From contig SMSO01000032.1 in NCBI GenBank assembly GCA_004764695.1, forward strand, positions 620,001-684,000: a stretch of 64,000 nt of DNA, given 5' to 3'. Below, in pieces: positions 31,291 to 64,000 of this stretch. A program made the translations under genes and the position numbers. The notes below the pieces were generated by a model. The model made no database searches and was not told the origin of the DNA. It saw only the letters and a program-made list of their open reading frames with translations. Source of the DNA: Schizochytrium sp. TIO01 (taxonomy: Eukaryota; Protista; Bigyra: Labyrinthulomycetes). Within the stretch, counting starts at the first letter, position 1; every line of letters begins with the position of its first letter.

Positions 31291-34200
31291 TCATTTTGAA
31301 GATGTTGCTGACGACGAAACCCGGCAGAACCGCATTGTAATGGAAGGATACGATTCTTTGATCTTCGTCGATACCTCGCTAAAATTCAAGCCGCGGGTCG
31401 ATTCACCATTGATGCTCATGAGAACATCACCTGCACAGAGACGTCCACAAAGTTCCGCAGGACCCTTGGTGTTATTCTCAAGAGTCTTAAACCCAGTCAC
31501 TACAACGAGATTATTCGGTAACCTGCCCAGACGCAAACCAAGCCCATGACGAGTATCAAAACGAACCTCAAACGAAGAAGACGAGCCGTGCTTGACTTCT
31601 TCCAAAACTCGTTGTGGTGGTTCATCATCAGCATCTGATCCGCGCAAAAGAAAATTCAGTAAATCAGTTTCAAGTTCCACCTCGCCTGCGCTCAACGAGC
31701 TATCATCATCAGGACTCAACCACTGCCGTGGCAAAGGTTCCTCGGCACCATCAGAAAACCGAACAATGTATTGCCCATCACCAACAATTGCAGCTACTAC
31801 ACCCTGAAAAGCAGCACCTTCGCCACCATAAACGACACGCACTGGCGTATTCACAGGCAGAAAACGTTGGATGCGCCAGCGTGGAACATTAGCCTCCACG
31901 CTACCATCATCGAAAGCTACACGAAAGTCCGGCAAATCACCACCATCCATGACCCGAGCTAATTGCCAACGATCAGTTCTTTCATCAAGCACCTCAACAA
32001 TGTCACCACGGCAAATCTCTAGAAAGGAGCTCGAGCTAGTTGTTGCTCCTAAATGAGTAGCACTACTCTGCGCTGCACTGCTGATACTACCAGTGCTTCC
32101 ATTCTGTGAACTCTGTGCATGGGCATCATCAAGAGCAAGACCGCTGCCTGGACTGCGAGATCTGTCGTGGTGTTTTGCAGCGAGTAAATCTTCAATTCCA
32201 GAAAGTAGACGCATAGCAGAGGGCTCAACTGCGTCATCTTCATCACCATCATCGAACAAAACTGCATAAGTACCATCCAGCATGTTACGCCGCAAGACAC
32301 TGCCACAGTAGTAACTAGAGTCAAAGTCGTAGAAAACGACAACTCGGGTTGCAGGGGACAATTTCTCCTCCGAAGGCGTCGGTTGCTGTAGAAAAAGACC
32401 CGCGTAAAGCTCCAGGCGACGTGAGTCGACCTCGCGACCTGACTCGTAGCTTTTCTTCAACAAACCAGTTGTCTCAGAAGTCTCCTGATCGTCGTTATCG
32501 CCCAAGGAACCTGTCTCCCCCATCAACTCTGCTGAAGATTGAACAGTTTCCGATGGCTGAGAACTAAGTCGCGAATATCTGTGGAGGTCACCAGGTTTAC
32601 CTGATGACGCACTCGTAGCAGAATGAGTATCCTGAACCGGCTCAGACCATCCAAAAAAGCCTAACACTGTGCTCATGAAGCGACCTGACCTACGACCTCT
32701 CGACTTTCCTTTGCCACTTGACTTACGATGCCATAGTGAAGGCCGTAGTTGCAAATATACGTAGAGCAGAAGAACTGCACCGAGCAAACCAGCAGTGCTG
32801 CACAAAATAATCAACTTCCAGGAAAGAGCTGCAGCATTGAGACAAGACCGCTCCGGCACCTTACTACGGCGGCAAAACGCCATGGAAATGTCATCAAGCC
32901 CAATCAAACATGTATCGTTCGATGAACTGCTTTCTGGGCAGCAATACTGCACAACACTAGACTTGCAATCTAAGCAATCAGACTTACTAGCCAATTGAAC
33001 TGGTCCACCTGATCGTGCATGGAGTCTTTGGATAAGCGTAGGAGCATGCGTGGGAGCATCTGATTTGGTATCTGATGCAACGCAATAGTACGAGAACTCC
33101 TTTGATGCGTGGCGGCGAATTACCACATCCTCAGCTCGTGTCCACAGTCGTCCAGGTAGACTCTTGCCTACAGCACTTGCTGGATCCACAAGTTGCTTCC
33201 GAACAACTGTTTCCACGTCAAGAATATTCATTGTTGCATTCATGTAGATCACAAGGCTAACAACAAATGATTCACCTTCTCCGCTTTGGTCCTCCGACAA
33301 CTCTGTTAGAGTATCAAGTTCCACCAGACTCTTTTCAATTTCAAGAGCGCTTGCCACGATTGAATCAATGTGACTAGCACGGGCGCGCATATCCATAAGG
33401 ACACGACGATCATCGTGGTGCTTCACGTCTATGTCAAAACGAAAGCTGACCTCCAACATCATCTGCTCAAATGGGTCATTTGATTTCACGTTCGCGCATG
33501 AACCCAGGTTGCAGGGCCGCAGGCTCACCATCTCGTAGGGGCAGCCACCACTACTTCCCCCGTTGGGGAAGTACGCCTCACGGTGTCGCCTCTCAAAGCC
33601 TGGCCCACAAGCACGGTCACAAATAGACCACGGGCCCCAGGATCCAACACGGCATTCATTATCCAAAATATCCAACGCAATTTCATGCGAACTGCTTGCA
33701 TACAAAAGATCTGACGAAGCGCTTTCGATCCGAATAAGGCCTGTTCGTGTTTTTGGATCCACCAGTTCGTTTTCAGGAATTTTGAAATGCAGACGTTGTG
33801 TTGAGTTCCATGTGGACGCATCATAGCGAAGTGTCCATTTCTGGGTGAGGTGGAGACCATCATCTACCCCACTAAATACTGGCATCAGGACAGTCACACT
33901 GAGCACAACCTCGCTCCACGGCTCGGATGCAAGCGCTAAGCCGAGCTCCATGTCAGTTCCTTCCACAGTGTCGAGGCGATGGACACTTCCCAACCGGGAG
34001 AGGGCCGGTTCTTTTCCAATTTGGAAAACAACCCCTGCCCTTTTCGAGTCCACTAGATCAACCGCCATGCTGGTAACTGGTAATGAGGCGTAGCGAATAT
34101 CGCTGCTCATTACTTCATGGGAAATATGCCAGCGGCGCACTGAAGGCTGAGCAGGGTTTGCGCGTTCATCTAAGAAATTATCAAGCTTTGTCACGCTCAC

Positions 34201-37200: not shown

Positions 37201-40200
37201 GAACCACAAATCCTCACCATCAGTTAGTCGAAGTATTGATGTTGCAGGCTCGTCACCATCCATAAGAAGCTTCACATGAACTCGACCGAGAGGCCTACTT
37301 GCAAGGCGCACACTATATTCGACAGGTTTTCCGCCTTCCACCACACGTAGAACACTCAACTCACGATTGTCTCCGTGCATGGTATTAGCAGGCGCCACGA
37401 CAACTCCCGGCTGAGAACGATGCGCAGATGAGCTTTCTAGAATCGTGACTCTAACAAAAGTTGGCTCGACAGAGGAAAAGACACCTTGCTTGGAACTCGA
37501 CACCTCTAGCCAGACTTGATCCTGATGTGTGCCCTCTACAAACTCATCCAAGTATGCTTGTAAGGCAACAACCTGTTCGGTATCATAGTTTGAGCTGTCA
37601 AAACGCAAAACTGGGTCTGCGAGCTTTGCTACAGTTGCACCAGTGCGACGAAGGCATTTGAAACCAAAAGGGCATTCGCTGTTTGTTGTACAACTGCGCC
37701 GCTCATTACCCATACCGAGTACTTCAGATAAACAAGTTCCATCACGAGCATTGACACGAACGTAAACAGTGGAACCAGATGATGGCGGCTGAGTTAAACG
37801 AACGCCAATAAACCCAGCACTGCCACCCTCCACTAGTGTCAATGATGATTGATTTACCAAAATACCAGCCGTCTCGTCATCAAGAATCTTCACAGGGACC
37901 GAAACAGAGTTTGCAGAAGCTCCCATTGAAGAAAAGAATGGGTCAATTGTGCCAACATCATGGAAAGATGCAAGACGGAAAGAAAGATCAGCATTGTATT
38001 GTGCCAAAGCTTGGGTAACCCTATCGTTCACTGCCTTGACTCGAAAGCTGGCACCCTTTGACCAAGCTTGAGGTTCGATCTTAAATACTGAGGGGACCAC
38101 CTCCAACTTATCACTATCAAAAACAGCTTCGATGTGCAAGGCTGTTCTAGGTTCGGCGCCCAAGTGCACAATGACTGTTTTCCACTGACTATCAGCCTCC
38201 TTTAGATTCAACATCAAAGGTGTTGCCGACAACTCTGGTACCCGAGTAGTATGTACATTTACTAGTGCAGCGCCGCTTGTATTCATGAAACGCTCGTCAT
38301 TAGCCGCAGTCACAACCCCGCGTGCGTAAATTGATCGGATTGCAGGGCCCGCCAAGGTTGTACTCTTGAGTGCAACTGAGACGGACTGTGGCGTATTCCA
38401 GTTTTCTTTGTTGAATACTAGAGTGCTTGGGCTAAACCGGACCAGGTCAACCGCCGGAGTGAGTGCAACACAGGTTTCGAGAAGAGGGCTTTCGCAGTCA
38501 GAAAGAGCATGCGAACATTTCTTTCCTACAGCCCCGGTCAATGTGTTAACACAAACCTGGGATGTAGAGGAGCTTTCTGCCATGGCAGAGCCGCTAGCCT
38601 GTATGCGCACCTGTACTTGCTCACCATGAGGCATTGAAGACAAGTGCACGAGCAACACGCCTTCCGAATCCTTATCCACCATTATCTCGCCAGCAGCAGC
38701 TCCATTCGCGCCTGAGGTCTCCACAATAACGCCAGCAGCATCCACATGAAACAATCCGACGTAAAAAGTATCATCCTTAGGTACAGAGCACGTGCAGTCA
38801 TGTGCAGAGCCAATGCATGCACCTTGTAGCACGCGGCCGTCAAACCCACGACCCATACACACGAGACCTCCAGCGTAACCACCAAGTGCTGGTAATCCCT
38901 CAATACGAACTCGCGTCTGCTTGCCAGGTGAGCCATTTGGAAAGACTACAACAGGGCTTGCTGTTTCGCAAAGAAACGGGTCGTGCATGAGCAGAGCATG
39001 AGCTCTACTGAAACCTTCCCGAATTGAGCGCTCTCCAACATTAGAAATCTTCACACTAAATTCTCCTGCGGACCGTGCAAAGGTGAAGAGATGCTGCCCA
39101 GGGAGAAGTTTCAGTAAAGGTAACACGGCATCCTGATGAACTTGAATAGCAACATCCGTACCACACGCAGATAGGCGCTCAGGCATGCTATCGTTTCCGT
39201 CGACAAGGCGTCGATTCAGGTTATCAAGGGTAGAGCTAACAAGATCGACCATTGACACCAAAGTCTCGGTATCAGATGCGCCCTCGAGTGCAAATGCCGC
39301 GGCCCCAAGCCGAAGAACAGCATCTTGTGAGGAAGATGGAAGCCTAGCGAGCAGGGCTAAGATTGGGCTTAGACGCACAAAGGTACTATTTCCGCGAAGA
39401 GTCTCAATAAGGCTGGCAAGAAAAGCATTGGCATCGTCAGCAGCCGGAGCAAAATGTTCGCACCTAGAGCCGTAATGGGATGGAGGGCACTGGCATACGA
39501 ACCGAACAGATTTTGACCAACTAGAATCCGCTTCACAAGAACCCAAAGGACCGCAGTCTGAATCAGAAGTACACATGGCCCCATGTTTGGAAGATGAAGC
39601 GGCAGTTTGCAAATGAGGATACAGCTCTGCAGCCCAAATAGAGTAGAGTTGCAGGACTCGCTCCGGCTCGGAGCTATGACTCGCAAGCTCGCTTTGCATG
39701 TACTGCGCCAAGCTACTACTGCCCAAGTCCAAAGATGATGCAAAAACTTTCGTAGACGCCACACATGCTTCCTCTGCTTGTGTAAATATCTCATGTTTGG
39801 GCTTTGAAACATGTGATCGAGCGAGACCCAAAACTACCCATTCGCCCGAAGGGATCACCGTGTCGAGATTGTTCAACTTGGTGTCAAAGCCGTATATAAT
39901 TGGAAGCCTCTCCGAAATACTACACGGTGAGACCCCTTGTACATAAGGGACCAGGGCGAATGAATATTCCACCTCGGTGTCGTGCTCGAGCCCAGACCAC
40001 CCATCCATACGTGCATGTACTGTGGAGACCGCACTTTGCATTGAGGTCTTGGAAAGAGAGATCTGGCCTGGAGCAGGTGCAACGTTCAGAGCAGAAATGA
40101 GGCCATTGATACTCTGATGCATATCAGGAGAAACTGGAAATGCGCCCTTTGCATATCTCTTACTAGACGAAGTAGCGCGGATGCGATGCTTAGCCAGATG

Positions 40201-55800: not shown

Positions 55801-58800
55801 TCCAGTCTCTGTTACTGCAAAGTCACCGTAGAGGACAAGTGAGCTCCCGTAACCCAACTCTAGTTCACCATCACAAATGAAGAATGAGTCTTCGTCAAAA
55901 GTCGAAGCACCAAAGATTGCGACGCCACCTCCTTCCTCAACTGTGATGGAGCCAGACACTTCGAGCAAAGCTTCAAAGGTGACGTTGCCAGTGGAGGCAA
56001 CATGAAGGGAGCCACGTACGTATACATCTTGTGAGTAGATTGTCTCATCAAGCAACGTAAGGTTACCATCAATGGTGATATTACCAGCGCTGTCGAGCGC
56101 GCGTACGAATTCGACTTGGGCAGTAGGGCCAATGTACATGCGACCAAAATTCTGCATGGGCCGGTCAATCGAGGCAACACCATGAATAGCGATATCAGCC
56201 TCATCAGCAACGAAAAGTCCACCAGTATCTAGAATACGGCCATTAAAGTCCACAGAAGAGGACCTTGAAACATCAACTTCAACGCCATCAGCCTGGGCAA
56301 AGGCAACTGCGAGCGCACCCGCAGCAGATCCAGATGCCGTAGATAGCAAGCTCGCCTCAGGGGTTTGGTCGCGTCGTTGCCAACCATGAACCTGTTGCAA
56401 AGAGCGTCGCAATGTGCGTGCGGAAGTACGAGTCTCCAAGCGAACGCTAAGACCATCTGTAGAAGTTAATTTCAGTTGTCGAGTCAGAGACTCCAGTAGT
56501 GTAGCTTCGCTTGGGAAAGCCTCGCATGTGTGCACGGGAAGTGTCCACTCTACACCAACTCCTGCAGAGGCACCCATGTCAAAACGAACATTGGTTGTGT
56601 ACACACGATCGGGGCAAGAGAGCAGGCGACGTCCGGAGGCACTAGCCACGTCATACTTAAACAAGTTACGCTCAAACTCAGCGAGGATTGTTTGGGAATC
56701 AAGGCCAATGTGCACTCGACCAGTGTTCACCACATCACCTCCAACATTTGCAGAACCACCAAAGTATATCTGCCCATTGACTTTAAGAAATCCAGCACCT
56801 GTATACATGCCTGCGATAAGAACATTGCTTGACGACCCAACAATAAAACGCCCCTCGTTGACTACACGGTGAGAAAGCAATGTGTGACCCTCAAAGCTCA
56901 CAGTGCCATAAACAGTGAGGGCACCAGTGTGAACAACCGAGTTCATAAACACCATTGACTGACCTTGAGGAATGACCAGGTCGCCATCAGCAAACACTGG
57001 ACTGGTAAACACGGTCGTGCCAGACGAAGCAGCTCCGCCGGGACTCGAACTGAGTGAGCGTCGTGCCATAACAAGGTTCTCTGGATATTCAACGGCAATA
57101 ACTCCGCCACTTGAAAGGCGAACTTGACCATCCACCCGAAGACGCGAGGCAGTGTCAAGGAAGGCTCTTACTGCAGCTCGGGTGCCGACAACATGTATGG
57201 CACCTGATAGCTGGGGTGTATCCCGGTCACAACCCTCCTTTTTGTTGCTAGGTGCAATGACAACCTGAGAGTCTTCAATAGAAAGTACCGAGCCTTCTGC
57301 GAACTCAAGTGAGCATGTACCAACTGCTGTGAGCGTTGTGTCACCAACTAAATTTATGCGAGCACCACTTTTAGCTCGCATAATACCACGCACAATTACC
57401 TGTGCGGAAAGTTGTGTCTTGCTCTGAAGAAGTTGATACTGTAAGAGAGCTGCTTTGTCAACAAGTTCATTGACCAGTGAGGTCTGGACTGAGAGTGTTT
57501 TAAGGCCAAACTCGTTTTCAACACGAGGTTGTCCTTCAAGTTTAACAAAGGCCTCTGAGCTAGGGACCTCCCAAACTGCATCAGAACCAACACGCAGGAA
57601 ACCCCTATTAATAAGACCAAAGGCAGAGCGGAAGGTGCCAGCAGTAATTTCCAGGAACCCATCGTTAAGGATCCGCGCATCAATGGTGGCTGAGCCCTTC
57701 ACTTCGAGGTAACCAAGGTTACGCAAGCCGCACTCTCGTCCAGAAGAAGCGCAGCGAAAAGCCAAATCTCCCTCGAGAACCATACTTGCACCAGGAAGGA
57801 TGGTCAGCTTGGTGCGAGGTGACAGCAGGGCACCAGCGCCGCGCTCCACCAGTCCATGGCCAAAGAGGTCAACTCGCGCAAGATCGAGAAGTGGCATAAT
57901 TGCAGAGGAGTGTTCAAGGTCCTGCTCCTCATGGTGATCATCATCGTGAAGATCGCTTGAAGATATTTCCAAATCGCCTAGCACAACGAGAAAACCACGG
58001 TCAGAGCCCGTTAGTGTAACCGAGCCACCTAGACGGAGCAGACCACCGGGAAGAACAACTATTCCCTGCTCTAGATGTACCGAGTCAGCGTCCGTGAGGT
58101 CAAGTATGCCACCACGACCAATAACACTAAGGCGCCCGATCCGAATGCTACCGGTCAAGAAAAGGGTCTTCGTACTATCTCGATCCTTCTTGGCAGCACC
58201 AAGAAAGAATCCATCAAGAAGCACGCGGTTCATTGGATCGCGGCTACCTTCCACATGAAATTGGCTTTCCACCATAGCGCTAAAGTCGTAAAAGCTCATA
58301 ATTACATGAGCAAAAGCATCAATACTGGGGCCCAGATATGTGGATAGCCGGCAGCCCAACTGGGCTTGGCATAACACCTCTGGCTTTGAAAGTCCAGTGT
58401 AGTCAACAAAACGGAAAAAGTCCCCATATTGATATTTGTATTCAAGGTCATCGTACTGAGCAAAATCAACCTCTGACAGCTTATGGAGGCTGTCTAGATG
58501 CTTCATGAGATAACGAGGACCACTGAAGGTATCCGCTGCACCATTGTATAGCTTTGCATACATTTCCGCCCATGTCTGAGCTGCGGCAGAGCCTGGTACG
58601 AGCGCGCTATCCACACCTGGCAGAGTGTACGCCAGTATAGATCCTCCAACCTGTTCTGCGTTGCTTCTGCACGCACCGCAAGCACCACGGTCACAGTCAT
58701 GAGCGGGGCAATTGAGAATAATAGGGACACCAACATCAGAGATAAAACTGCCGTCGTCGCAAATATCATCATTAAGATGTTGCTCACACGAGGTATACCC

Positions 58801-61800
58801 AAGTCGGGCAGACGCGCACTCGCCGTTTGTGAGGCGCTTGCCGTTACAGTCCAAAATCCAGTCCCCCTCTGCAGCTGGGTCCGAACACACGGCCAACACG
58901 CGATCACAAAACCCAGTCCGACAATCTTCATTGTCCACGCAATGCAGACCGTTCAAACATGGGCCACAAAACGGACCACCGCAATCGACATCAGTCTCCT
59001 CGCCATCCTTTACTCCGTTTGCACAAGTTTGTGCAATACATTCGCCGTCAGGGCTACAAAGACCTGATGCACAGTCACGATTGAGAAGGCAGGTAGCCTC
59101 CCCAATCTCTTGACATGGAGAGCACTCTGGGCCACCGCAGTCCGGGAAAGTCTCGAAGCCGTTCTGAACTCCATCAAGACAAGATGGTGGTCTACAAGTA
59201 GAGTCAGACGGGGCACACAAGAGTGGGTGAGTACAATCTGTATTGGCGCTACAAGAAGCTCCAGTAAGGCATCCATCGCAATTGGCGCCACCGCAATCAA
59301 CATCAGATTCATCAACATCTTGCACCCCATTTGCACAGTGGCGAGGCAAGCAAGTATATGAAACAGGAGAACAGATATTAGAATCGCAGTCCGTGTTTGC
59401 CTTGCACTCGCGACCTACTGCACACGGAAGACACGAGTCACCACCACAAACTCCGCCTGCACACTGTGGTTGAACGCAACGTGCGGCGTCTTCATCACAA
59501 ATAAGATCACCATCACAATCATCGTTGCCGTTGCAAGTACTGAATTCTGCACATGCCTTTTCGCAGTTAGGACCACCACAGTCCACATCTGCCTCGCCGT
59601 TATTCATCACGCCATCATTGCAGGTTCCAGGGATACAGAGGTTGTCCTTGCAGACCTTGCTTGAACAGTCTGAGCCAACTTGGCAGAGAGACCCGTCAGC
59701 GCACGGGGCGCAATCAGGCCCACCACAGTCAACATCCGTTTCGGAGCCATCTTGGCGCTCGTTGAGGCAAGAGTTTTTCACACAAACACCAGCCCCTCCA
59801 CAAAGAAGATCATCCGCACAATCCTCGTTTACTGAGCAGGCCATGCCCGTCTGATTGCATGGTGAGCATTGAGGGCCACCACAATCAATATCGGTTTCCT
59901 CCTGGCCTTGCTTGCCATCACGGCAACTTGAAGGCATCAATAAGAGTTTACGCGCCTGCAGGTCAGAAGGTAGGCACTGCTGCATTAAAGGATCACACTG
60001 GAGTGGGATGGCACAGTCGCGATCTTTCACACACGTCGCAAGAGGAGTTCTGCACGGCGCACAATCTTGGCCACCACAGTCAACGTCTGTCTCATTTCCA
60101 GACATGACCCGATCAAAGCAGGATGCCAACGAGCATATCTCACGTTGAGGGTCGCATAAAAGACCAGATTCGCAGCCGTGGTCTTGAAGGCAGTGAACAC
60201 CTACCGGGCACGGTGCACACCCACCAGCGCAGTCAATGCCAGTTTCGTTGCCGTTTTGGATTCCATCATTGCACTGACGAGGAAAGCATCGACCTAGTCG
60301 AGGATCACAGAAGCCACTCTTGCAATCATTATCTTCAGCACAAAGGTGAAGATTGGTACATTCAGGACAAAATGGACCACCACAGTCTGTATCTGTCTCA
60401 AGACCATTGCGAAGACCATCTGTGCAGGTAAATGGCATACAGATGCCACGCTCCTCACTACAAAGTTCTTTGCAATCACGAACACTAAAGCACTCTTGGC
60501 CATTGTCACACGGGCTACATTCATGACCACAGTCAAGTCCTGTTTCGTTACCGTTCAAAATACCGTCAAAGCAAGTGGCCGGTGCACAAACTTGGCGAAA
60601 GGGTTCACACAGAAGACCTGAGGCGCAATCACGGTCTCCAATGCACCCCACACCTTTGGCGCATGGAGCGCAACTTCCGCCACAATCAACGCCCGTCTCG
60701 TTGCCATTAAGCACACCGTCTGTACAAGCGGGTGGGACACAAATGCCCATGTCCAAGTCACAGGCACCACTAAGACAGTCTGCGCCGGACTCACAGAGCT
60801 GTCCATCCTCACAAGGTGGGCAGTCCCCAGAACAATCCACATCAGTTTCTGAACCATCCTGGCGACCATTCTGGCAGCTCAAGGGGTAACACATGCCTTG
60901 GGTCATGTCACAGAAAGACTCGTCAGCATTGCAATCGCGTGGGAGCTCACATGGGTCACCAATTGTACAAGGAGGGCATTCAGGACCACCACAATCAGTA
61001 CCTGTCTCGTTTCTGTCGCGCCGTCCATTTCGGCAGGTAGCAGCAATACAAATGCCGTCGTGACAAGCATGACTAAAACAGTCTGAGTTACGTTCGCAGA
61101 GGAGTCCTACATCGCAAGGTGTACATGATCCACCGCAATCAACGTCGGTTTCAAAGCCATCAAGAACCTTGTTTGAACAATGCGATTCAAGGCAAATACT
61201 ATTCACTTCACAACAATGCTGGTGCTGGCAGTCTGTATGAGAGAGACAGGTTGCGCCGTCTGCACAGCGGCCACAAACTGGGCCGCCACAGTCTACAGCG
61301 GTTTCCAAACCGTTCTTGATTCCGTCAACACATGATGCGTCCAAGCAAATGCCCTGTTCGTGATCACATAGCCCACTGGCACAATCGGACGCAGCTTCAC
61401 AGTCCCGCCCGGCAGCACATGGGCCACAGATGTTGCCGCAATCAATGTCAGTCTCGTTACCATTCAGGACACCGTCAAAACAGGATGAAGGCATGCAAAG
61501 ACCTGAATGGGAGTTACAGTGACCACTCTTGCAATCTCTGTCGAGATGACACTCTGCTCCATCATCACAAGGAAGACAATCAGGGCCACCACAGTCCGTC
61601 GCAGTTTCATTACCGTTAAGAAGATGGTCTGCACAAAGCTGATTGAGGCAAGTACTAGTACCCGGGTCACAAACGCCACTAATACAATCTGCAGCAGCTA
61701 AGCAGTGACGTCCATTTTCACATGGCAAGCAATCTGGTCCTGCACAGTCAATGTCCGTCTCATTTCCATTCAAGATGCGATCACGACAGTGAGCCGCAAG

Positions 61801-64000
61801 GCAGACACCCATGTCTGCATCACATGTACGGCTCAGGCAGTCGGAGTCTACTGTACAGGATGAGCCAGCAGCGCAGGGTGCACATTCTCCGGCGCAATCT
61901 ACATCGGTCTCATCGGCATCCTGCACGCCATTGCGGCAGGTATCTGGAACACAAACGCCCAGCTCATCATCACAAGCATTTGACTGACAGTCCTCATCAA
62001 CTTTACAGAAACTACCGACGGAGCATTTTTGGCATCCGCCTGAGCAATCAACATCGGTCTCATTTCCATCGAGGATGCCGTTGCTACATGAAACAGCAAG
62101 GCAGTGACCCTCCTCGGAGTCACAGATGCCGGAGGCACAGTCAGAATCATTGTCACACTGCTTCGCATCTGCACAAGGTGAGCAATCAGGACCGCCGCAG
62201 TCGACATCAGTCTCAAAACCGTCGAGGATGCGGTTTGTGCAGTGTGCAGGCAAACACACGCGTCGGTGTTCGCAACAATTCTGTGAATCACAATCGTCGT
62301 TTGACTCGCAGGTGGAGCCATCAGGGCAGCGACTACAAGCCGGTCCACCGCAATCCTGATCGGTCTCAAGACCATTTTTGCGACCGTCTACGCAAGAGGC
62401 ATCCAGGCAAGTGCCAAGGTTCTGGTCACAAAGACCGCTGAGGCAGTCCGAAGCAAGCGAGCACTCCTTGCCTGCGGCACAGGGCCCGCAAATATTTCCA
62501 CAATCAACATCTGTCTCGTTTCCATTGAGAATGCCATCGCGGCAGGTTTGCGGCATACAGAGACCTGACTCTGTGCTACAAAGGCCGCTGAGGCAATCTT
62601 GATCAGAGACGCACTCCAGGCCATCGTGGCAGGGTGGGCAAAAGGCACCACCGCAATCAACACCTGTTTCGTTGCCATTGAGAATACCATCGAAGCACGA
62701 AGTGAAAGTACAAATGGAGGCCTCCGGGTGGCAACTCACCGGGGCAAACGGTGCATCGAAATCATCAAGCTGAGGCATACTCTCAACACAATCTTCAGGC
62801 TGAAGACAATGCGCGCCTAGTGCGCACGGCATGCACTGGGGTCCACCACAATCCACTGCAGTCTCATTCCCGTTTAGAATCCCATCCATGCAAGAACGAG
62901 GAACACAAATACCTGTGTCGGCATCGCAGGCACCGCTGAGACAGTCCCTGTTAGAAAGGCAAGACTGGCCATCCTCACAGGGCGGGCAGTCAATACCACC
63001 GCAATCAACGCCAGTTTCGGCGCCATCGCGCACACCGTTGCCACAGGAGGCGTCAACGCAAATTGCGGTTTCAGGATCACAGAGCCCTGACTGACAATCA
63101 TCGTCAGTGTCGCACTCGTAACCTTCCGAGCACGGTGCGCACAAGGGACCTCCGCAATCGACGTCTGTTTCATTTCCAGACTTGCGCCCATCTGTGCATG
63201 ACGCTGGCAAGCAATGGTGGCGGAAGTCTGTCTCGCACCTTTGCGAAAGACAATCCTCGTCCACTTCACATCCACCTCCCTGTGGACACGGCGTACACGT
63301 GTCACCACCACAGTCGACGCCTGTTTCATTAAAATTCATGCGTCCGTCGCGGCATGATCTCGGCAGACAAACCCGGAAGTGCTCACAGCATATCTCTGAC
63401 CTACAATCGTAGTCCGCACGACACATCTCGCCCACACGGTGCCTCGTGTCACGAACTCTCCACATCGCCTCCTCATTTTCTTCCTCATAAGACTCATCGA
63501 AAGCTCCCCTGTTTTCTCCTATTAAGTCTCCATTCGGTGCACCGTCTGTTGCGGTTGAGTTCTGAATGGGATGAGCATTGGTTTCACTTTCTGGGTCGGT
63601 GTGGACACCTGCATTCTCCGAACCCTCATTGTGGTTCTGGTTCGCATCCTGTGCCGGTTCTAGTGCGGTGACAGCCGGGTTTTCTGGATCAGGACGATCC
63701 GATTTTGCGTTTGTGGCTGAAGACTTAATCTCATTTGCAGCCTCATTTGGGTTTGGTCGTGACTCAAGTCCGGCGTCGAGATTTGGATTTGAGTTTGCTA
63801 TGTTTAAATTTGAATTTGGATGCTCTTTGCCGGCGAGCTCGATTTCCTCCTCCCCGCGGTCACTCTGGGCATCTCGCCAGTACTCGGGGGTCTGATCCGT
63901 CTCTACACCACGGCCTACTGTTTCCTCTGCCGCCAGGACCGCCGCGCACAGCAACAGGACCGCCGCCAGCGCCGCCAAGAGCGCCGCACGGGCGCCTATG
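31291..64000 (-). CDS. Giant (>=~10,900 aa) single-pass type I membrane adhesin/receptor-like protein; composite of four ORFs joined by three -1 frameshifts; 5' end beyond the window
   Basis: ORFs 63978-47146, 47149-41174, 41351-40716 and 40818-31291 abut or overlap. Adding one base at each junction restores the repeat consensus with no gap. Signal peptide only at the far N-end and a single TM helix only near the far C-end. The frame stays open to the window edge (IGARAALLAALAAVLLLCAAVLA). Confidence 0.88.
31318..31575 (-). other. C-terminal PDZ domain
   Basis: FEVRFDTRHGLGLRL...VVVTGF...GPAELCGRLCAGDVLMSINGESTRGLNFSEVSTKIKESYPSITMRF: GLGL carboxylate-binding loop and G-D-x-L-x-x-I-N-G signature. 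Confidence 0.92.
31715..32365 (-). other. Three cytoplasmic Tudor/Agenet-like (SH3-like barrel) domains
   Basis: TRVVVFY..SSYYCGSV...DGTYAVLFDDGDEDDAV; GDIVEVL..DRWQLARV...DFRVAFDDGSVEANV; TPVRVVY...AFQGVV...DGQYIVRFSDGAEEPL. Confidence 0.75.
32752..32814 (-). other. Single transmembrane helix followed by a basic stop-transfer patch
   Basis: LIILCSTAGLLGAVLLLYVYL followed by RPSLWHRKSSGKGKSRGRRSGR (positive-inside). Confidence 0.9.
33140..33465 (-). other. SEA-like (ferredoxin-fold) juxtamembrane module
   Basis: strand-helix-strand-strand-helix pattern LEVSFRF...HIDSIVASALEI..SLVEL...GESFVVSLVIY...; fold call by eye only. Confidence 0.4.
33496..33654 (-). other. Thrombospondin type-1 (TSP1/spondin-type) domain
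   Basis: CRVGSWGPWSICDRACGPGFERRHRE...GGCP.....RPCNLGSC: WxxWxxC, CG-G, RxR. Confidence 0.93.
33660..38735 (-). repeat. Block B: 12 Calx-beta/cadherin-like beta-sandwich repeats
   Basis: recurring Y.V.L.S.P...V.V ... P..L.F...(N/D)W..PQ.V.V.A.DD ... H...S.D..Y ... V.I.D(D/N)D..G pattern. Confidence 0.85.
38750..40476 (-). other. Internal polycystin-1-like cassette: pre-REJ module, REJ C-terminal module, EGF-like domain, helical region, degenerate GAIN/GPS motif
   Basis: PTLVSVNMTSSGRHLVVTFD..C..LF...LG..SICRW; NVAPAPGQISL....STVHARMDGWSG...VEYSF...LDTVIPSG; CTSDSDCGPLGSC...CQCPPSHYGSRC (39460-39573); VCMGRGFDGRVLQGACIGSAHDCTCSVPKDDTFYV (38755-38860). Confidence 0.6.
40716..41351 (-). CDS. 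Giant protein segment 3 (about 2 Calx-beta-like repeats)
   Basis: MLYLSESG...PTTLVFNRASWNVSQTIAV...DKDWAGLAL; the last ~35 aa are out-of-frame tail. Confidence 0.85.
   Translation of the reverse strand: MLYLSESGAPAHVEVALQSMPTAESVEVQLHSPSEVTVAPTTLVFNRASWNVSQTIAVLAKTLPTAGGKPSVGVIYPSTHCDGDSLYNMEERAGPGIEVVTMDKDWAGLALSIDRVTVSGGKPSFVNLSLTSAPIDEVMVQVHVPPRTILIRHEDPCSGRVTHENRTVALLRASPTNLCLNPKTGPRHKLWNCSMRLPKFRKKSLRMVCKK
41174..47149 (-). CDS. Giant protein segment 2 (1991 aa of Calx-beta-like repeats)
   Basis: Long ORF with no signal peptide; starts mid-repeat at a TTG; the last ~60 aa are out-of-frame tail. Confidence 0.92.
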   Translation of the reverse strand: MNFYMDDSEIVGNELRMDIVDDDIAGIRVDLPDGRRWITLDEGESVDIAIQLHSKPLAPVTVHITEHGLGFLAFDQDLLVFNRTNWDRSQLVRLVAVADDFAWSEGKRYSSISLSTDSLDGDYAETNPINVEVEIQDNDEVGLEFVTSPQSLLDNVVLSEGETFVYGVRLKSKPWVSSVHQDMAATISLHAMDGFCRSRDLGSLPDYSRPCSYDGHCDVSSQYCFKLATIEVSPAQLVYTSENWNDIQLVTVNALEDDILEPVRQRTFVSHRVQSPDPVYASLAAAPITLAVEEAKEPAIILSRYSVSLTEGMAGETYSVRLSSQPWSPVTISISSSSEVVTSRREITITPNAWFKEHALTVTAIEDGIREVPSPHRARLVHRATSEDPFYNGIRAADLLCNIFDPEDAHYDQSQESSAMLVILHDQAGSIPFTAKQLVVDEASSDSKDILTFYVSLAQRPTGRVDVTVRPYSGHCVTGEGVANEELFCSSDSDCRAYCDTSACLEASRCEVETKVKSLLPTGTVTFLEKDWQVPKAVRLSAFQDGLSESVRHRTKVLLEASSAYDSAYDRYLLGVFIDILDRDVARLETRLPEEPIHEGTYGSYSLWLASRPLSHVVVQISTSPGIELTDCVAHMMCELTFGPSNWSTPVPVRFLVHDDEYADGDPTTGNQRHVSFVHHVVTRDERFKGLSETVTLRVIDNDTGGIHLSKQVLEVNEDGEDKFYELRLQSKPRDRFCARYGAGRDVDHTMPCESSADCIRPLKQAVPLGSSLRTLAQDLNARCLHDSPTALQISKESDSAPVIAVLIVQAPSGFCLVGEAKEPHFDQFCSHDADCKGSWGAIPGTCLTDTTVQLYGQQAMFTSQNWSTPVHIRVQGVPDHVAEPSVQHITVSHSLLTKDPGYKERKSNLMVNVIDADKAGLEISIETLRFADNALKQYSVKLRSKPFGAVRVSVTIDGEGLELVRQGHRGDNTLRFDLTNWDVPQVVTVTGETCSIPEAIMASRILHHVSSRDHAYGYLTAAELPIEIDTSPHSGVVVSTSHVFVEEGGMVAAFTVRLHARPLPGSGPVVVKLSVPGGHCESIARNEEPAFGSMCSLGSDCALGNECIQGTKAYANVDELIFTETSWSAPQVVLLQAFDDDIVEAFEDHTLITLAATNAAEPTYVKVFILDNDVPGIVWVEGANYGRLSATVNRATRTSFHLRSKPWATVTVFLSVQGARGKTSLSASEMTFTPENWNVAQTLDMVADRLDSFRLVARTDSKDRNYGQNGLPSQVLMVDVFADALNSIDLVFSESAVSLDEGEQRVYSVRVRSEGNSLGYSEKPTFHLSILAASKMVNVFPTDIELSLGASTNITVTALEDMRHDGLQTSILSHVLSLDGFQATWDLPLSIGDDDDGAVYIAPRTLYLGQGKGETEYAVKLADHLDKSIRISPLQTSALCLNTDGTLSDQSCDSTCDCIDLGVSRLQISPTSELLSPGNDPARFIISENPEALEFADAIWGAAWIALRHEADDKTIALPSVAVSIPAHGRKAHLIVETSQLKGCGEGNAGTIRVKLASKPVANVVVNARNEHVDPSNSCALFTSMTVYHDKREASILGLEDSVPSSLLAWGSKDALGFFVLSDSWETLKILRWLGSGLLEYAVCQDIDCLSTRFPSSGSGQSGKLIHFFATPVQAAMFSEWGCSGSSKRPKVSLSRSELTFSPSSWNTWQSIEVVMPCQSHGTSAAKVSVESWINLVAGVFLESKTFVSTEFPQINKDVLYENLSVLADVRASSDREKGLILSQSSLALGDSSEGLRKYKYSISLASLPEPLHKSKYAVRVFVLPTMTVCAGQLCNPRLDANCRCSDNDLQTLGVTVDPAVVNFTSNNWNVDQTITISVAQDAFDAHLAFARGAASLEHIAESSDPTYNEVRRSLPISIGDKEATGVSLIQICFTCLNQGHRLMLKLRFKACLQQNLLRYNFTALQRLQLLRLPWCLIAHLGMCLRLLLC
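47146..63999 (-). CDS. Giant protein segment 1 (>5,600 aa): signal peptide, Cys repeats, LNR-like, beta-helix, FN2-like x2, FN3-like, Calx-beta-like repeats
   Basis: 16.8-kb open frame, open to the window edge; the track start at 63978 is a TTG inside the signal peptide. Confidence 0.95.
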   Translation of the reverse strand: MGARAALLAALAAVLLLCAAVLAAEETVGRGVETDQTPEYWRDAQSDRGEEEIELAGKEHPNSNLNIANSNPNLDAGLESRPNPNEAANEIKSSATNAKSDRPDPENPAVTALEPAQDANQNHNEGSENAGVHTDPESETNAHPIQNSTATDGAPNGDLIGENRGAFDESYEEENEEAMWRVRDTRHRVGEMCRADYDCRSEICCEHFRVCLPRSCRDGRMNFNETGVDCGGDTCTPCPQGGGCEVDEDCLSQRCETDFRHHCLPASCTDGRKSGNETDVDCGGPLCAPCSEGYECDTDDDCQSGLCDPETAICVDASCGNGVRDGAETGVDCGGIDCPPCEDGQSCLSNRDCLSGACDADTGICVPRSCMDGILNGNETAVDCGGPQCMPCALGAHCLQPEDCVESMPQLDDFDAPFAPVSCHPEASICTFTSCFDGILNGNETGVDCGGAFCPPCHDGLECVSDQDCLSGLCSTESGLCMPQTCRDGILNGNETDVDCGNICGPCAAGKECSLASDCLSGLCDQNLGTCLDASCVDGRKNGLETDQDCGGPACSRCPDGSTCESNDDCDSQNCCEHRRVCLPAHCTNRILDGFETDVDCGGPDCSPCADAKQCDNDSDCASGICDSEEGHCLAVSCSNGILDGNETDVDCSGGCQKCSVGSFCKVDEDCQSNACDDELGVCVPDTCRNGVQDADETDVDCAGECAPCAAGSSCTVDSDCLSRTCDADMGVCLAAHCRDRILNGNETDIDCAGPDCLPCENGRHCLAAADCISGVCDPGTSTCLNQLCADHLLNGNETATDCGGPDCLPCDDGAECHLDRDCKSGHCNSHSGLCMPSSCFDGVLNGNETDIDCGNICGPCAAGRDCEAASDCASGLCDHEQGICLDASCVDGIKNGLETAVDCGGPVCGRCADGATCLSHTDCQHQHCCEVNSICLESHCSNKVLDGFETDVDCGGSCTPCDVGLLCERNSDCFSHACHDGICIAATCRNGRRDRNETGTDCGGPECPPCTIGDPCELPRDCNADESFCDMTQGMCYPLSCQNGRQDGSETDVDCSGDCPPCEDGQLCESGADCLSGACDLDMGICVPPACTDGVLNGNETGVDCGGSCAPCAKGVGCIGDRDCASGLLCEPFRQVCAPATCFDGILNGNETGLDCGHECSPCDNGQECFSVRDCKELCSEERGICMPFTCTDGLRNGLETDTDCGGPFCPECTNLHLCAEDNDCKSGFCDPRLGRCFPRQCNDGIQNGNETGIDCAGGCAPCPVGVHCLQDHGCESGLLCDPQREICSLASCFDRVMSGNETDVDCGGQDCAPCRTPLATCVKDRDCAIPLQCDPLMQQCLPSDLQARKLLLMPSSCRDGKQGQEETDIDCGGPQCSPCNQTGMACSVNEDCADDLLCGGAGVCVKNSCLNERQDGSETDVDCGGPDCAPCADGSLCQVGSDCSSKVCKDNLCIPGTCNDGVMNNGEADVDCGGPNCEKACAEFSTCNGNDDCDGDLICDEDAARCVQPQCAGGVCGGDSCLPCAVGRECKANTDCDSNICSPVSYTCLPRHCANGVQDVDESDVDCGGANCDGCLTGASCSANTDCTHPLLCAPSDSTCRPPSCLDGVQNGFETFPDCGGPECSPCQEIGEATCLLNRDCASGLCSPDGECIAQTCANGVKDGEETDVDCGGPFCGPCLNGLHCVDNEDCRTGFCDRVLAVCSDPAAEGDWILDCNGKRLTNGECASARLGYTSCEQHLNDDICDDGSFISDVGVPIILNCPAHDCDRGACGACRSNAEQVGGSILAYTLPGVDSALVPGSAAAQTWAEMYAKLYNGAADTFSGPRYLMKHLDSLHKLSEVDFAQYDDLEYKYQYGDFFRFVDYTGLSKPEVLCQAQLGCRLSTYLGPSIDAFAHVIMSFYDFSAMVESQFHVEGSRDPMNRVLLDGFFLGAAKKDRDSTKTLFLTGSIRIGRLSVIGRGGILDLTDADSVHLEQGIVVLPGGLLRLGGSVTLTGSDRGFLVVLGDLEISSSDLHDDDHHEEQDLEHSSAIMPLLDLARVDLFGHGLVERGAGALLSPRTKLTILPGASMVLEGDLAFRCASSGRECGLRNLGYLEVKGSATIDARILNDGFLEITAGTFRSAFGLINRGFLRVGSDAVWEVPSSEAFVKLEGQPRVENEFGLKTLSVQTSLVNELVDKAALLQYQLLQSKTQLSAQVIVRGIMRAKSGARINLVGDTTLTAVGTCSLEFAEGSVLSIEDSQVVIAPSNKKEGCDRDTPQLSGAIHVVGTRAAVRAFLDTASRLRVDGQVRLSSGGVIAVEYPENLVMARRSLSSSPGGAASSGTTVFTSPVFADGDLVIPQGQSMVFMNSVVHTGALTVYGTVSFEGHTLLSHRVVNEGRFIVGSSSNVLIAGMYTGAGFLKVNGQIYFGGSANVGGDVVNTGRVHIGLDSQTILAEFERNLFKYDVASASGRRLLSCPDRVYTTNVRFDMGASAGVGVEWTLPVHTCEAFPSEATLLESLTRQLKLTSTDGLSVRLETRTSARTLRRSLQQVHGWQRRDQTPEASLLSTASGSAAGALAVAFAQADGVEVDVSRSSSVDFNGRILDTGGLFVADEADIAIHGVASIDRPMQNFGRMYIGPTAQVEFVRALDSAGNITIDGNLTLLDETIYSQDVYVRGSLHVASTGNVTFEALLEVSGSITVEEGGGVAIFGASTFDEDSFFICDGELELGYGSSLVLYGDFAVTETGSTTVDGAQIDVYSPAVYFDGIYYQTKGAFVSVEDGGILVFENEFSSDENAQISVASRGKLRFMGNSIFAQDLVTGTAYRSLTDQYVALSSKGTVIVARTATLTMEGTELQSTGSLEAKEGSTMACTSSDSKLNLHSSVLDGLLAVNNTCVLTFSGSSAIGGSVIVAHDAVVVVQATRVTLDQGALWVSDGVLSIDNDASLVAKGRLRSRGHTLNRGRLLIASENTAPSIFSSTLISQGSASFSGAVILRGTARFTGDVTIDIGGAVYLDNANVTMAGSFAHDGILDTGTDASSVFICASAECTSTTESRVQGFGAVVLAESSEWELLGEVTVSQTSAEWTVVDSAQLYLGGQAYIGATMRNDGSLFVTTDADTRFTNTVISSGATQVDGVMELLGANAEFDGEVGGAGTILIGAGCKVDFLGDGLLRGGMEIHETGSAAFWSSSFTLQGSTENAGDMMISAGANLVFSSSGSGSGVGQSTSAQFVNSGTFRNYGNVTLASVAQLGGSVESTGSLIVQPTGEATIVGLAEVREGEWLVNEGELIIDAEGELTIFDNATLVSSVSSFVQIAGSMTIDSQAFVDMRGSCASASSAILTVVGELLLSASADFQGFMEVDGSVIIANDAAGTGSSDKGAVFHDILLKTGELSLQTGARCQIDGGLTATRDIFVMPSAELIFTSDSVSKLSSTSDADPQIISVGTIMIDQDASLIAAVDIISTGEIEVHGSLELDGALIALQESAQVIRDIVPDFLLADLNEISDDDVGGLSVMEGGTLLGYATIEGDLLNEGIVHPGSDAEPSGTLTVTGTYTSRLTGTLEVAATSVDESTMPLYGVIDVQGEADVSGSITVVMDRFYSETIRFAPLLSRRSGLDLASGTIFEATGPSEYSFTSDGFVDQTVTDGTQRDVLYVDVQSSYSVASRRILASLEGFEDFASFSTEAPTLGDFSAKNEALNTSMTEHDMDSSSSPSVGTHVLDVWLGGIRTIEPSRARRIVHTIEAYLGMVPASQTQRKAHMPGFFEALATEVVSRRSGKVASVGGFKGGIQMTLTFQCPTMLECRSFCETFEKLHSQIAKDLVERLHALGVNMMSMRAPSCASVQVNAHSSSTMPPICVSDGERGTFLTAGVECHEPCTCVASSCSCFMRNGKWASCKCGPFSGSKARQEINVDFDQLSLGDLAHPRVECASNGLGEAKAGLPCSFPFWYDGQEHHECIGSGWGGEGFCVVNGNIAGCKCSGVNPTSQTGDAHESLPAASSRQMPKCVTTGTGAAAQGDACVFPIYHKGVAHYRCIDRDVDGGWCYNNRGERGGCDCKQHNSLLIESANSSSAEAGDDLAEGRNAGAVLERVVAGKRTDDSVAVRFRASQTMQVWLYALLAGSPQPSKEDILACADSDFDDAFYSMVRAVGGSQEQEGMLEGLEASTSYDIYITADHPDAETVLLRNVRTSRAKSRNLMELSEEERGHLVIFDTGIELWEGDGTVREYGIKLDRQPDSAVTATVVLPPRDQLDASPQEIFFIPGNWNTSQYVQVYARDDGVLEDDPHTVVIRHRLESKDLRFVVDEDDQDADTINVVIHDVTHGTDESAALVIRPAKLELTEGGSAGVYTIKLAREPTSIVSVSVILPPGEDIELDPLVLEFTSANWGDAQRVTVRAIDDRVEEDFLQVVQLYHKVSSSDPTFTEADAPVVMVFVNDTQSHGEEPQFVVTPTSLDLSEGASTMLVVRLANSSLAPAQDVYMRFNASRKAIFNPPQLVFTPDDWMTPRSVVMHIPCDGLMLTSDSKATFEEIHFVVGSKDFLYHGLSVEPVPMRITDSDVPGLVMSTTRVQGLSELNPMQEVYFDVWLAASPREGALVRVDLTEYDGFCLDRRNGPVFHLGPCATNMDCELASTDKALGRSVECVKGTGAYLAMNDKTLFFDMDNWHIPQTVTLRVFVDERVEAPVHMSKVGLSMSSDRDNRFVRATCFQVDTMASPNGVSLIEASECAVLIEIEDADIAAVEFSKPLLHLDAQADSATYNVSLASRPWAPVTVNLAMSATGIAVEPRQLVFGPKSWNHPQEARVSVQSDVGEADQYVAVILHEAVSPDNVYHQLVEELTVQVVQDASTRIVLSKHTVSVSEDGLVETVEVRLARKPQVSALHADRAVTVDFNISNGHCISAVSGELRPRVTPCRSDADCVGSAINNEDIFCALNDRVRVSPPRLSFSASNWALPQRITISAIDDDIASGITVARTLIVPRAASEDVMFNDDEAVCVAMGPHGDCVEYDTSTASHGNIMVAILDNDEPGLQLSKKALSFSENLKSDDWVASMLTIQLTSRPHSPVYIEAKVPENATHRLSVVPRTLEILPDSWSVAHSVRLIPVDNDYAESIDEQDITVQFITESQDPAYSNVIDEVIASVINDDEDGVRISVDEVILNKNGHTSFYDVRLMSNPRKRVRVEVLVALPVEIVAPRLNTLHFDENNWNVPQRVSLRALDDGESTCETVLTKGSSVLLCPPTVVHVMHTDVTSGSKAAELAVKVVDRHNGLTVWPQSLVLHERTSDRTVNILLHDRPEKRVALRLSLVGEGADRVELSARGPIVFTPENWDVVRTVTLHVNDDVAAHPDAHVRLEMNIEASGADARFAASPLLPVELLLIDADVPGLNVSSFQLYLEEDHAGSIHGSVIHVALSSRPTGEVLVESHFAEDELSAWPTTLKFDVSNWQIPQDVHVSAVNDDIAEPLGVRSSQLVFRTTSAFDADYFDLDHVEIEAIVRDDDIAGVQLSIGSESAMGSLLLEGQSKRFLIQLLSEPRGEVTVIASAISGTCVSPDHVLTDESCSVEHSCQHGQDSCEHDTKVWAFPERLTFSQESWAEPQELWVGAFGDAVLEEKFIPVLSIFQPSLLETHYMIVRI
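51470..51760 (-). other. Fibronectin type III-like domain
   Basis: SVAVRFRAS...VWLYALLAGSPQPSKEDIL...LEGLEASTSYDIYITA (L.GL...T.Y.IY signature). Confidence 0.65.
51870..52260 (-). other. Two fibronectin type II-like domains
   Basis: GLPCSFPFWYDGQEHHECIGSGWGGEGFC and GDACVFPIYHKGVAHYRCIDRDVDGGWC (C-x-F-P-F-x-Y-x-G...C...WC). Confidence 0.8.
53068..58165 (-). other. ~1,700-aa predicted parallel beta-helix region ending in an autotransporter-passenger-like cap
   Basis: continuous G-x-L/I-x-V/I-x-G, N-x-G-x-L-x-I short-strand periodicity, helix-poor; terminal GGTLLGYATIEGDLLNEGIVHPG...GTLTVTGTYT...GTLEV...VIDVQGEADVSGSITV. Confidence 0.7.
58670..58860 (-). other. LNR (Lin12/Notch repeat)-like module
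   Basis: SCEQHLNDDICDDG...LNCPAHDCDRGAC resembles C...xD.xCD...NC....DxGxC. Confidence 0.5.
58880..63423 (-). repeat. 29 tandem ~50-aa cysteine-rich repeats (C.DG..NG.ETDVDCGG..C.PC..G..C....DC.SG.C......C)
   Basis: 28 copies of the E(T/A/S)xxDC(G/S/A)x motif plus one degenerate unit (CAGGVCGG), counted in the translation. Confidence 0.93.
63930..63999 (-). other. Signal peptide (partial; initiator Met outside the window)
   Basis: IGARAALLAALAAVLLLCAAVLA-AEE: basic residue, hydrophobic core, small residues at -3/-1. Confidence 0.85.

Follow-up and report, generated by a model that had tools for sequence, protein, structure and literature searches.

A megadalton type I membrane protein with a predicted Calx-beta stalk in the labyrinthulomycete Schizochytrium sp. 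TIO01: a candidate surface tether

In the genome of the labyrinthulomycete Schizochytrium sp. TIO01, a stretch of 64,000 nucleotides (positions 620001-684000 of genome contig G000:C31, GenBank SMSO01000032.1; hereafter the window) carries on its minus strand four consecutive open frames, which together constitute one intact nuclear gene, apparently intron-less, for a type I membrane protein. The joined product (here referred to as the giant protein) comprises ~10,937 amino acids (aa) and has a mass of ~1.17 MDa. From the outside to the inside of the cell, the predicted order of its parts is ~30 disulfide-rich repeats, a beta-solenoid candidate, two fibronectin type II (FN2) modules, a 36-domain stalk with one insert, a thrombospondin type 1 (TSP1) repeat, a Cys-rich juxtamembrane region, a transmembrane helix and a tail with Tudor and PDZ domains (Table 1). 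The reading that we favor, and which we consider probable though by a good way from certain, is that the giant protein is a surface tether or adhesin of fixed length, probably stiffened by Ca2+, which carries its own cytoplasmic scaffold. Labyrinthulomycetes digest the marine detritus to which they attach, and to our knowledge the molecules of this attachment have not been established. The giant gene is a concrete candidate for such a molecule and is amenable to tagging and knockout.

The four open frames are found at 47149-63999 (5617 codons, open at the window end), 41177-47233, 40719-41384 and 31294-40860. All three junctions between them require one additional nucleotide, and each junction interrupts a stalk repeat, the remainder of which is read in the next frame. 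The window was compared over 41300-47299, i.e., across breaks 1 and 2, with contigs from four public runs, each belonging to a different study. In all four runs the contigs cross these 6 kb without joints and harbor one base more than the window at 47214 and at 41360, so that on the coding strand A5 becomes A6 and T3 becomes T4, respectively. Because the extra base is present in every run, breaks 1 and 2 are attributed to homopolymer errors of the assembly. A metagenomic ortholog, described below, reads through breaks 2 and 3 without any length anomaly, at break 3 residue for residue. Introns at the junctions were ruled out because the frames overlap and a single added base yields a seamless repeat. 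Since long-read homopolymer errors split the gene into four frames, it will probably escape automatic annotation.

A first-pass annotation, made from the DNA letters without database searches, had joined the four frames to one coding sequence of ~32.7 kb encoding at least ~10,900 aa. Its coordinates and size are correct, and the frames are repaired by one nucleotide each; the extent that it gave for the gene holds within the window, but the start codon is located ~100 nt beyond the window end. The first frame runs 48 codons beyond this end, with ATGs at window-equivalent positions 64104 and 64083 and an upstream stop at 64146. Throughout this text, residues are numbered from the first codon inside the window, i.e., ~35 residues encoded beyond the window come before residue 1. 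Searches were run on the separate pieces, while a joined copy with an X at each break was kept for bookkeeping.

The three frameshifts in the assembly could also be taken to mean that the joined frame is illusory, with a pseudogene in decay or a set of several adjacent genes at this locus. We regard this explanation as extremely improbable, given that two of the frameshifts are missing from four independent runs, that all three fall within domains continuing across them, that no stops are found across the 32.8 kb of the joined frame, and that the ortholog is intact. The pattern of variation also speaks against it: the window and the public runs are distinguished by 17 variants, of which 10 are synonymous, compared to ~27% expected (p = 0.006), and none makes a stop. 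Besides the two missing bases, there are five positions (43055, 43594, 44051, 44373 and 46353) at which all four public runs disagree with the window. These differences, three of which alter an amino acid, may reflect further assembly errors or strain variation.

The giant gene is probably transcribed. Three of the four runs were guessed to be RNA; their assemblies amount to 25-48 Mb, compared to 64 Mb for the genome, yet they contain contigs of 10.1, 14.1 and 24.6 kb of the giant gene. By coordinates, the longest of these terminates ~165 nt beyond the stop codon, as would the 3' end of an mRNA. This contig evidence is suggestive rather than a proof of transcription.

The stalk (residues 4190-10115) is composed of 36 copies of a ~115-aa domain, arranged in three blocks. 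A Cys-knuckle insertion of ~35-45 aa is found in 12 or 13 of the 36 domains. A profile built from 33 stalk copies matched only the Calx-beta domains of NCX1 in the PDB; the matches were weak (E 0.24 and 1.4), in register. An AlphaFold 2 (AF2) model of a natural domain pair from block 3 (residues 9277-9547) was obtained with a predicted local distance difference test score (pLDDT) of 85.5 and a predicted template modeling score (pTM) of 0.75. The top Foldseek match of this model was NCX1 CBD12, i.e., a tandem of Calx-beta domains, with E 6.6e-11. The VIA ranking of the same model places PapD/ASH sandwiches above Calx-beta, and the Ig-like beta-sandwich fold is therefore not specific to the Calx-beta family. 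For a direct profile comparison, a canonical Calx-beta profile was seeded from Pfam-verified stretches of retrieved relatives, where domains touched by the stalk model were excluded. With hhalign, the stalk aligned to this profile over 111 columns (probability 94.6%, E 6.9e-8). The stalk of the ortholog reached E 0.027 and 14.9 bits against Pfam PF03160, under the cutoff of 27. Together, the PDB profile matches, the AF2 model with its Foldseek match and the hhalign alignment identify the stalk as a predicted array of divergent Calx-beta domains, in agreement with the earlier description of its NW..PQ repeats as Calx-beta-like.

The stalk motifs DD..E and DDD.AG align with the Ca2+-site motifs of NCX1, and the acidic positions at these sites are kept in 70-88% of the stalk domains. 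Because acidic positions at the domain junctions are conserved, as in Calx-beta, we infer from the sequence that the stalk may bind Ca2+ at these positions.

Relatives of the giant protein are numerous and mostly partial. An exhaustive protein search with the last 1,200 aa yielded 1,561 proteins, none of which exceeds 40% identity to the query; most share the stalk domain only, and some also carry canonical Calx-beta. In a set of 152 retrieved proteins, the stalk-type domain was present in 115, with 1,844 copies in total, often beside canonical Calx-beta. The metagenomic fragments P0151/P0006, P0046 and P0071 harbor the whole C-terminal cassette (stalk, TSP1, juxtamembrane Cys region, transmembrane helix, Tudor and PDZ) at 25-39% identity. 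These sequences, as well as the ortholog L005, are uncharacterised fragments that cover C-terminal parts. P0151 and L005 differ from the giant protein by a second PDZ domain between the Tudor domains, and P0046 by having fewer Tudor domains. In the literature, we found no paper describing the giant protein or its combination of modules, which is consistent with the earlier statement that no described protein of this architecture is known, apart from the existence of the uncharacterised metagenomic orthologs.

The ortholog (L005:2-12424), found in a scan of metagenome contigs, consists of 4,141 aa uninterrupted by stops. Domain for domain, it runs parallel to residues 6713-10893 (~4,190 aa) of the giant protein, with E 7.6e-281, 29% identity and >90% of positions aligned. 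The best-kept parts are PDZ, Tudor and TSP1, at 40-46% identity, with the tail modules at 41-46%. The contig, Ga0105053_10001574, has another 33.6 kb upstream of the stop, i.e., there is room for a gene of the same size. Because each stalk domain has its counterpart in the ortholog at an identity of only 29%, the sequence comparison suggests that the length of the stalk is under selection.

This correspondence points to a constrained length rather than to a variable array of adhesin domains, and thereby favors a rival reading, in which the giant protein would be no adhesin or sensor for external targets but a structural spacer or tether for what covers the organism itself (wall scales or extracellular matrix, for instance), with the stalk setting the distance between membrane and wall. 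A paralogous giant gene, in which 11 stalk domains are combined with a coiled-coil tail and a PT region of mucin-like character, would fit such a role. FN2, TSP1 and Cys-rich tips, on the other hand, typically bind ligands, and no link to wall material was found here; we consider the spacer unlikely.

The topology agrees with the first-pass annotation, which had described an ectodomain reaching from a signal peptide to a transmembrane helix, followed by a tail of ~490 aa: the N-terminus carries a hydrophobic segment, there is a single transmembrane helix at residues 10394-10416, and the tail comprises 486 aa. Among the modules named at that time, FN2, TSP1, Tudor and PDZ were all recovered above their Pfam cutoffs. 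For FN2 (fn2, PF00040), two stretches scored 29-30 bits against a cutoff of 22.2. For TSP1, TSP_1 scored 21.9 bits against a cutoff of 21.6 and TSP1_spondin gave E 7.5e-9, while the TSP1 family profile matched thrombospondin-1 in the PDB (E 1.9e-12). The PDZ domain had PDB matches down to E 1e-8, and the Pfam scores of Tudor and PDZ are listed in Table 1. The LNR and SEA modules had been assigned by appearance and were not recovered: neither yielded a Pfam match at E ≤ 1, and SEA also gave no match in the PDB. Elsewhere in the genome, an open frame of 2,742 aa (G000:C33:1786624-1790271, plus strand) contains at least 14 tandem Tudor-like units, which resemble the first Tudor domain of the tail.

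The mid-stalk insert contains a REJ-like part, an EGF-like Cys module and a GPS-like motif of four Cys residues. When the insert was used in an Atlas feature search, the ten best family-assigned matches were all REJ, with a top score of 0.91. In the matching region of the ortholog, Pfam REJ (PF02010) gave E 1e-4 and 21.5 bits, under the cutoff of 25, and in the giant protein itself there was no Pfam REJ match; these results point weakly toward the REJ module proposed earlier. The GPS and EGF modules proposed with it fared less well. The four Cys residues of the GPS-like motif are conserved in the ortholog, while neither protein has the HL/T cleavage triad, and we found neither a Pfam match to GAIN or GPS nor a sequence match to solved GAIN domains. 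The EGF-like segment had no Pfam match at E ≤ 1 and only weak matches in the PDB (E 0.5-2). A protein homology search with the REJ/GPS region alone returned no relatives.

A conserved four-Cys motif of this type after a REJ-like module, as well as the juxtamembrane segment previously taken for SEA, could indicate that the giant protein is cleaved after synthesis at GPS-like, SEA-like, dibasic or R-x-x-L sites. Cleavage would yield a shed or non-covalently held N-terminal fragment and a membrane stub, as in adhesion G-protein-coupled receptors (GPCRs), polycystin-1 and mucins. The missing triad and the lack of any family-model or PDB sequence match for GAIN, GPS or SEA make this scenario quite unlikely in our judgment; it would be compatible with a role as a tether or adhesin.

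The N-terminal part of the ectodomain is dominated by Cys-rich repeats with the consensus C.DG..NG.ETDVDCGG..C.PC..G..C....DC.SG.CD...G.C. Exact cores of the DVDCGG type return at intervals of 353-354 aa, and the order of repeats is similar from one block of seven to the next, a pattern that fits the seven-unit super-repeat noted earlier. No Pfam or NCBIfam family matches the repeats, and a PDB profile search gave chance-level matches only. Relatives were sought in bacterial and archaeal genomes with a degenerate DNA pattern for the NG-x-ETDVDCGG core, which is found at ≥120 loci (i.e., at least this number), most of them in Myxococcota, including Polyangiaceae, Nannocystis, Sorangium, Minicystis, Labilithrix and Sandaracinus. 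The profile of the Cys repeat matches, along almost all of its length, 74 of the 80 GTDB loci sampled (384 repeats, at most 24 per 8 kb, E 1e-11 to 1e-15). Therefore, the link of these repeats to bacteria, already proposed in the first-pass annotation, is real; the repeat type is present in Myxococcota and in some archaea. The myxobacterial proteins (in Polyangiaceae, Nannocystis, Sorangium, Minicystis and others) contain the same ~48-aa repeat in tandem arrays, and this is the only module that they have in common with the giant protein.

Bacterial contamination as the origin of the giant gene is ruled out by the eukaryotic neighbors, the 64 Mb genome and the eukaryote-type modules. Within the same genome, the Cys-rich repeat was also observed in at least nine other loci, several of which lie within open frames of ~3,000 aa.

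Between the Cys repeats and the FN2 modules lies the beta-solenoid candidate, a region rich in G/S/A/V/L, nearly devoid of Cys and Pro and without internal repeats. An AF2 model of this region made without an alignment is of low confidence (pLDDT 38.5) and was used for the fold class only; its structural matches are all right-handed beta-helices. Hydrophobicity in the region is periodic at 2 and ~7 residues. A right-handed beta-helix fold class is likely, if weakly supported, for residues 1940-3600. No relatives of the region were found in Pfam, NCBIfam, Atlas, protein homology searches or a search of the host genome; the protein homology searches, i.e., those with residues 1735-4180 and with the solenoid alone as well as that with the REJ/GPS region, covered a length range that excluded full-length proteins of ~10,900 aa. 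The earlier description as an autotransporter-like beta-helix is thus weakly borne out as to the fold class, but neither Pfam nor NCBIfam ties the region to autotransporters. An autotransporter passenger was also rejected on the grounds that the giant protein ends in a transmembrane helix and a cytoplasmic tail, not in a beta-barrel.

From the above, a mechanism may be proposed in which acidic motifs at the domain junctions would bind Ca2+ and thereby stiffen the stalk to a rod of fixed length. Domain counts give a rough length of a few hundred nanometres for such a rod. It would keep the tip, i.e., the Cys repeats and the beta-solenoid, off the membrane and available to an external partner, which could be a substrate, wall or scale material, or another cell. 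On the inside, the three Tudor/SH3-like barrels and the PDZ domain of the tail would link the rod to a cortical scaffold. A Ca2+-stiffened stalk had already been proposed in the first-pass annotation, which also named attachment of the ectoplasmic net as a possible role; both proposals are hypotheses.

Several observations weigh against this account of the giant protein as a Ca2+-stiffened tether or adhesin. No segment of the giant protein matches Pfam Calx-beta (PF03160) at E ≤ 1. The conservation that was found covers residues 6713-10893. Continuity at break 3 is supported by the ortholog, while the evidence from public runs reaches breaks 1 and 2. The RNA status of the three runs is a software guess. 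The beta-solenoid call draws on the low-confidence model and the periodicity. The accessible part of the supplements to a proteomics paper on a related species makes no mention of these domains. Finally, Ca2+ binding, length, ligand, location and role are what we infer, whereas gene integrity, topology, the modules listed and conservation are what was found.

In vertebrates, ADGRV1 (also named VLGR1) is a very large adhesion GPCR, the ectodomain of which is mostly a long Calx-beta array; its other features include a GPS-type motif and coupling to cytoplasmic PDZ scaffolds. The giant protein resembles ADGRV1 in being a giant surface protein with a mostly Calx-beta ectodomain, a GPS-like motif and a link to PDZ, and by analogy ADGRV1 would be its closest functional counterpart. 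No sequence orthology between the two was found. Unlike ADGRV1, which has seven transmembrane segments, the giant protein has a single one, its PDZ and Tudor domains are built in, and its tip is formed by Cys repeats and the beta-solenoid candidate. Furthermore, its GPS-like motif has no HL/T and is located mid-stalk, ~2,000 aa ahead of the membrane. A second group for comparison is that of polycystin-1, PKDREJ and the sea-urchin REJ proteins, in which a REJ-like module is also followed by a GPS-like Cys motif. In contrast to these proteins, the giant protein harbors neither an 11-transmembrane channel-type region nor PLAT, and its REJ-like part scores under the Pfam cutoff and resides mid-stalk rather than adjacent to the membrane. 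The giant protein falls outside every receptor family considered. As to adhesion GPCRs and polycystin-1 specifically, residues 10394-10416 are the only hydrophobic segment besides the signal, i.e., there is neither a 7- nor an 11-transmembrane region.

These likenesses leave room for a more specific idea, namely that the giant protein is a force-bearing link comparable to an adhesion GPCR or polycystin without the multi-pass part. Here, a rigid Calx-beta rod of conserved length would be combined with a mid-stalk REJ/GPS-like module serving as mechanical fuse or switch, and Tudor and PDZ would relay the signal to the cortex; the tip, i.e., Cys repeats and beta-solenoid, would be of bacterial (e.g., myxobacterial) origin. 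We regard this idea as doubtful and offer it as a speculation.

Giant repeat proteins with Calx-beta (P0001, P0007 and P0008, of which P0001 also contains a LapA domain; their sources are partly judged bacterial) share the stalk-type domain with the giant protein, but lack its FN2 modules, its REJ-like insert and its cassette of TSP1, transmembrane helix, Tudor and PDZ. The giant protein may be seen as a protist surface fibre on the megadalton scale, assembled from three sources: a Cys repeat abundant in Myxococcota, a Calx-beta stalk common with giant bacterial proteins, and FN2, TSP1, REJ-like, Tudor and PDZ modules of animal style.

Table 1. Features of the giant gene in the window, from the N-terminal to the C-terminal end, and other loci with the Cys-rich repeat
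Feature	Position	Strand	Remarks
Coding sequence of the giant gene within the window	31294..63999	-	Stop codon 31291-31293; ATG just outside
Hydrophobic signal peptide or signal anchor	63925..63999	-	Residues 1-25; ~35 residues precede, encoded beyond the window
Acidic Asn-rich low-complexity linker	63445..63924	-	Residues 26-185
Cys-rich repeats, 29-30 in tandem, ~51 aa each	58882..63444	-	Residues 186-1706
Cys cluster (9 Cys), LNR-like in the first-pass annotation, unconfirmed	58666..58857	-	No Pfam match at E ≤ 1
Candidate right-handed beta-solenoid, ~1,660 aa	53200..58182	-	Residues 1940-3600
Two fibronectin type II modules	52105-52215 and 51874-51984 (51874..52215)	-	Residues 3929-4042; Pfam fn2
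Stalk block 1, ~20 divergent Calx-beta domains (predicted), some with Cys-knuckle	43196..51432	-	
Break 1	47214..47219	-	One base lost from coding-strand A run; assembly error
Degenerate stalk-like stretch, 356 aa	42128..43195	-	Residues 6936-7291; kept in ortholog at 25% identity
Stalk block 2, 4 domains	40654..42127	-	Holds breaks 2 and 3
Break 2	41360..41363	-	One base lost from coding-strand T run; assembly error
Break 3	40845..40860	-	One additional nucleotide required somewhere within the interval; ortholog continuous here
Mid-stalk insert, 657 aa: REJ-like part, EGF-like Cys module, GPS-like four-Cys motif	38683..40653	-	Residues 7783-8439
Stalk block 3, 12 domains	33655..38682	-	Plain and Cys-knuckle types in strict alternation
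Thrombospondin type 1 repeat	33496..33654	-	Residues 10116-10168; Pfam
Juxtamembrane region: segment SEA-like in the first-pass annotation (unconfirmed) and conserved Cys-rich stretch	32821..33495	-	Residues 10169-10393
Transmembrane helix	32752..32820	-	Residues 10394-10416; sole hydrophobic segment apart from the signal
Cytoplasmic tail, 486 aa	31294..32751	-	Residues 10417-10902
Tudor 1	32203-32337	-	Pfam Tudor_3, 33.2 bits vs cutoff 25.8
Second and third Tudor/SH3-like barrels	~31939-32037 and ~31729-31785	-	Weak SH3 and DUF7141 matches only
C-terminal PDZ	31321-31554	-	PDZ_6 29.6 bits vs 27; PDZ 24.6 vs 23.2
Other Cys-repeat loci in genome G000	C13:1564454-1565458, C13:4398000-4399019, C6:1759599-1760750, C34:4115884-4117032, C33:2754018, C30, C24		

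The convergent neighbor of the giant gene, at 28367-30352 on the plus strand, encodes a protein of 661 aa with a C-terminal helical bundle of the TFIIS N-terminal type (Med26) and an acidic YL1-like stretch, and is probably a nuclear transcription-elongation factor. Because of this TFIIS-N domain, the setting of the giant gene is taken to be that of an ordinary eukaryotic nucleus. On another contig of the same genome, a second giant open frame (G000:C34:894727-910692, plus strand; loci L003 and L004) encodes 5,322 aa. Besides a signal peptide or anchor and a mucin-like region rich in Pro and Thr, it has 11 domains of the stalk type (divergent Calx-beta) and a long C-terminal part resembling a coiled coil; its paralogy to the giant gene is limited to the stalk.

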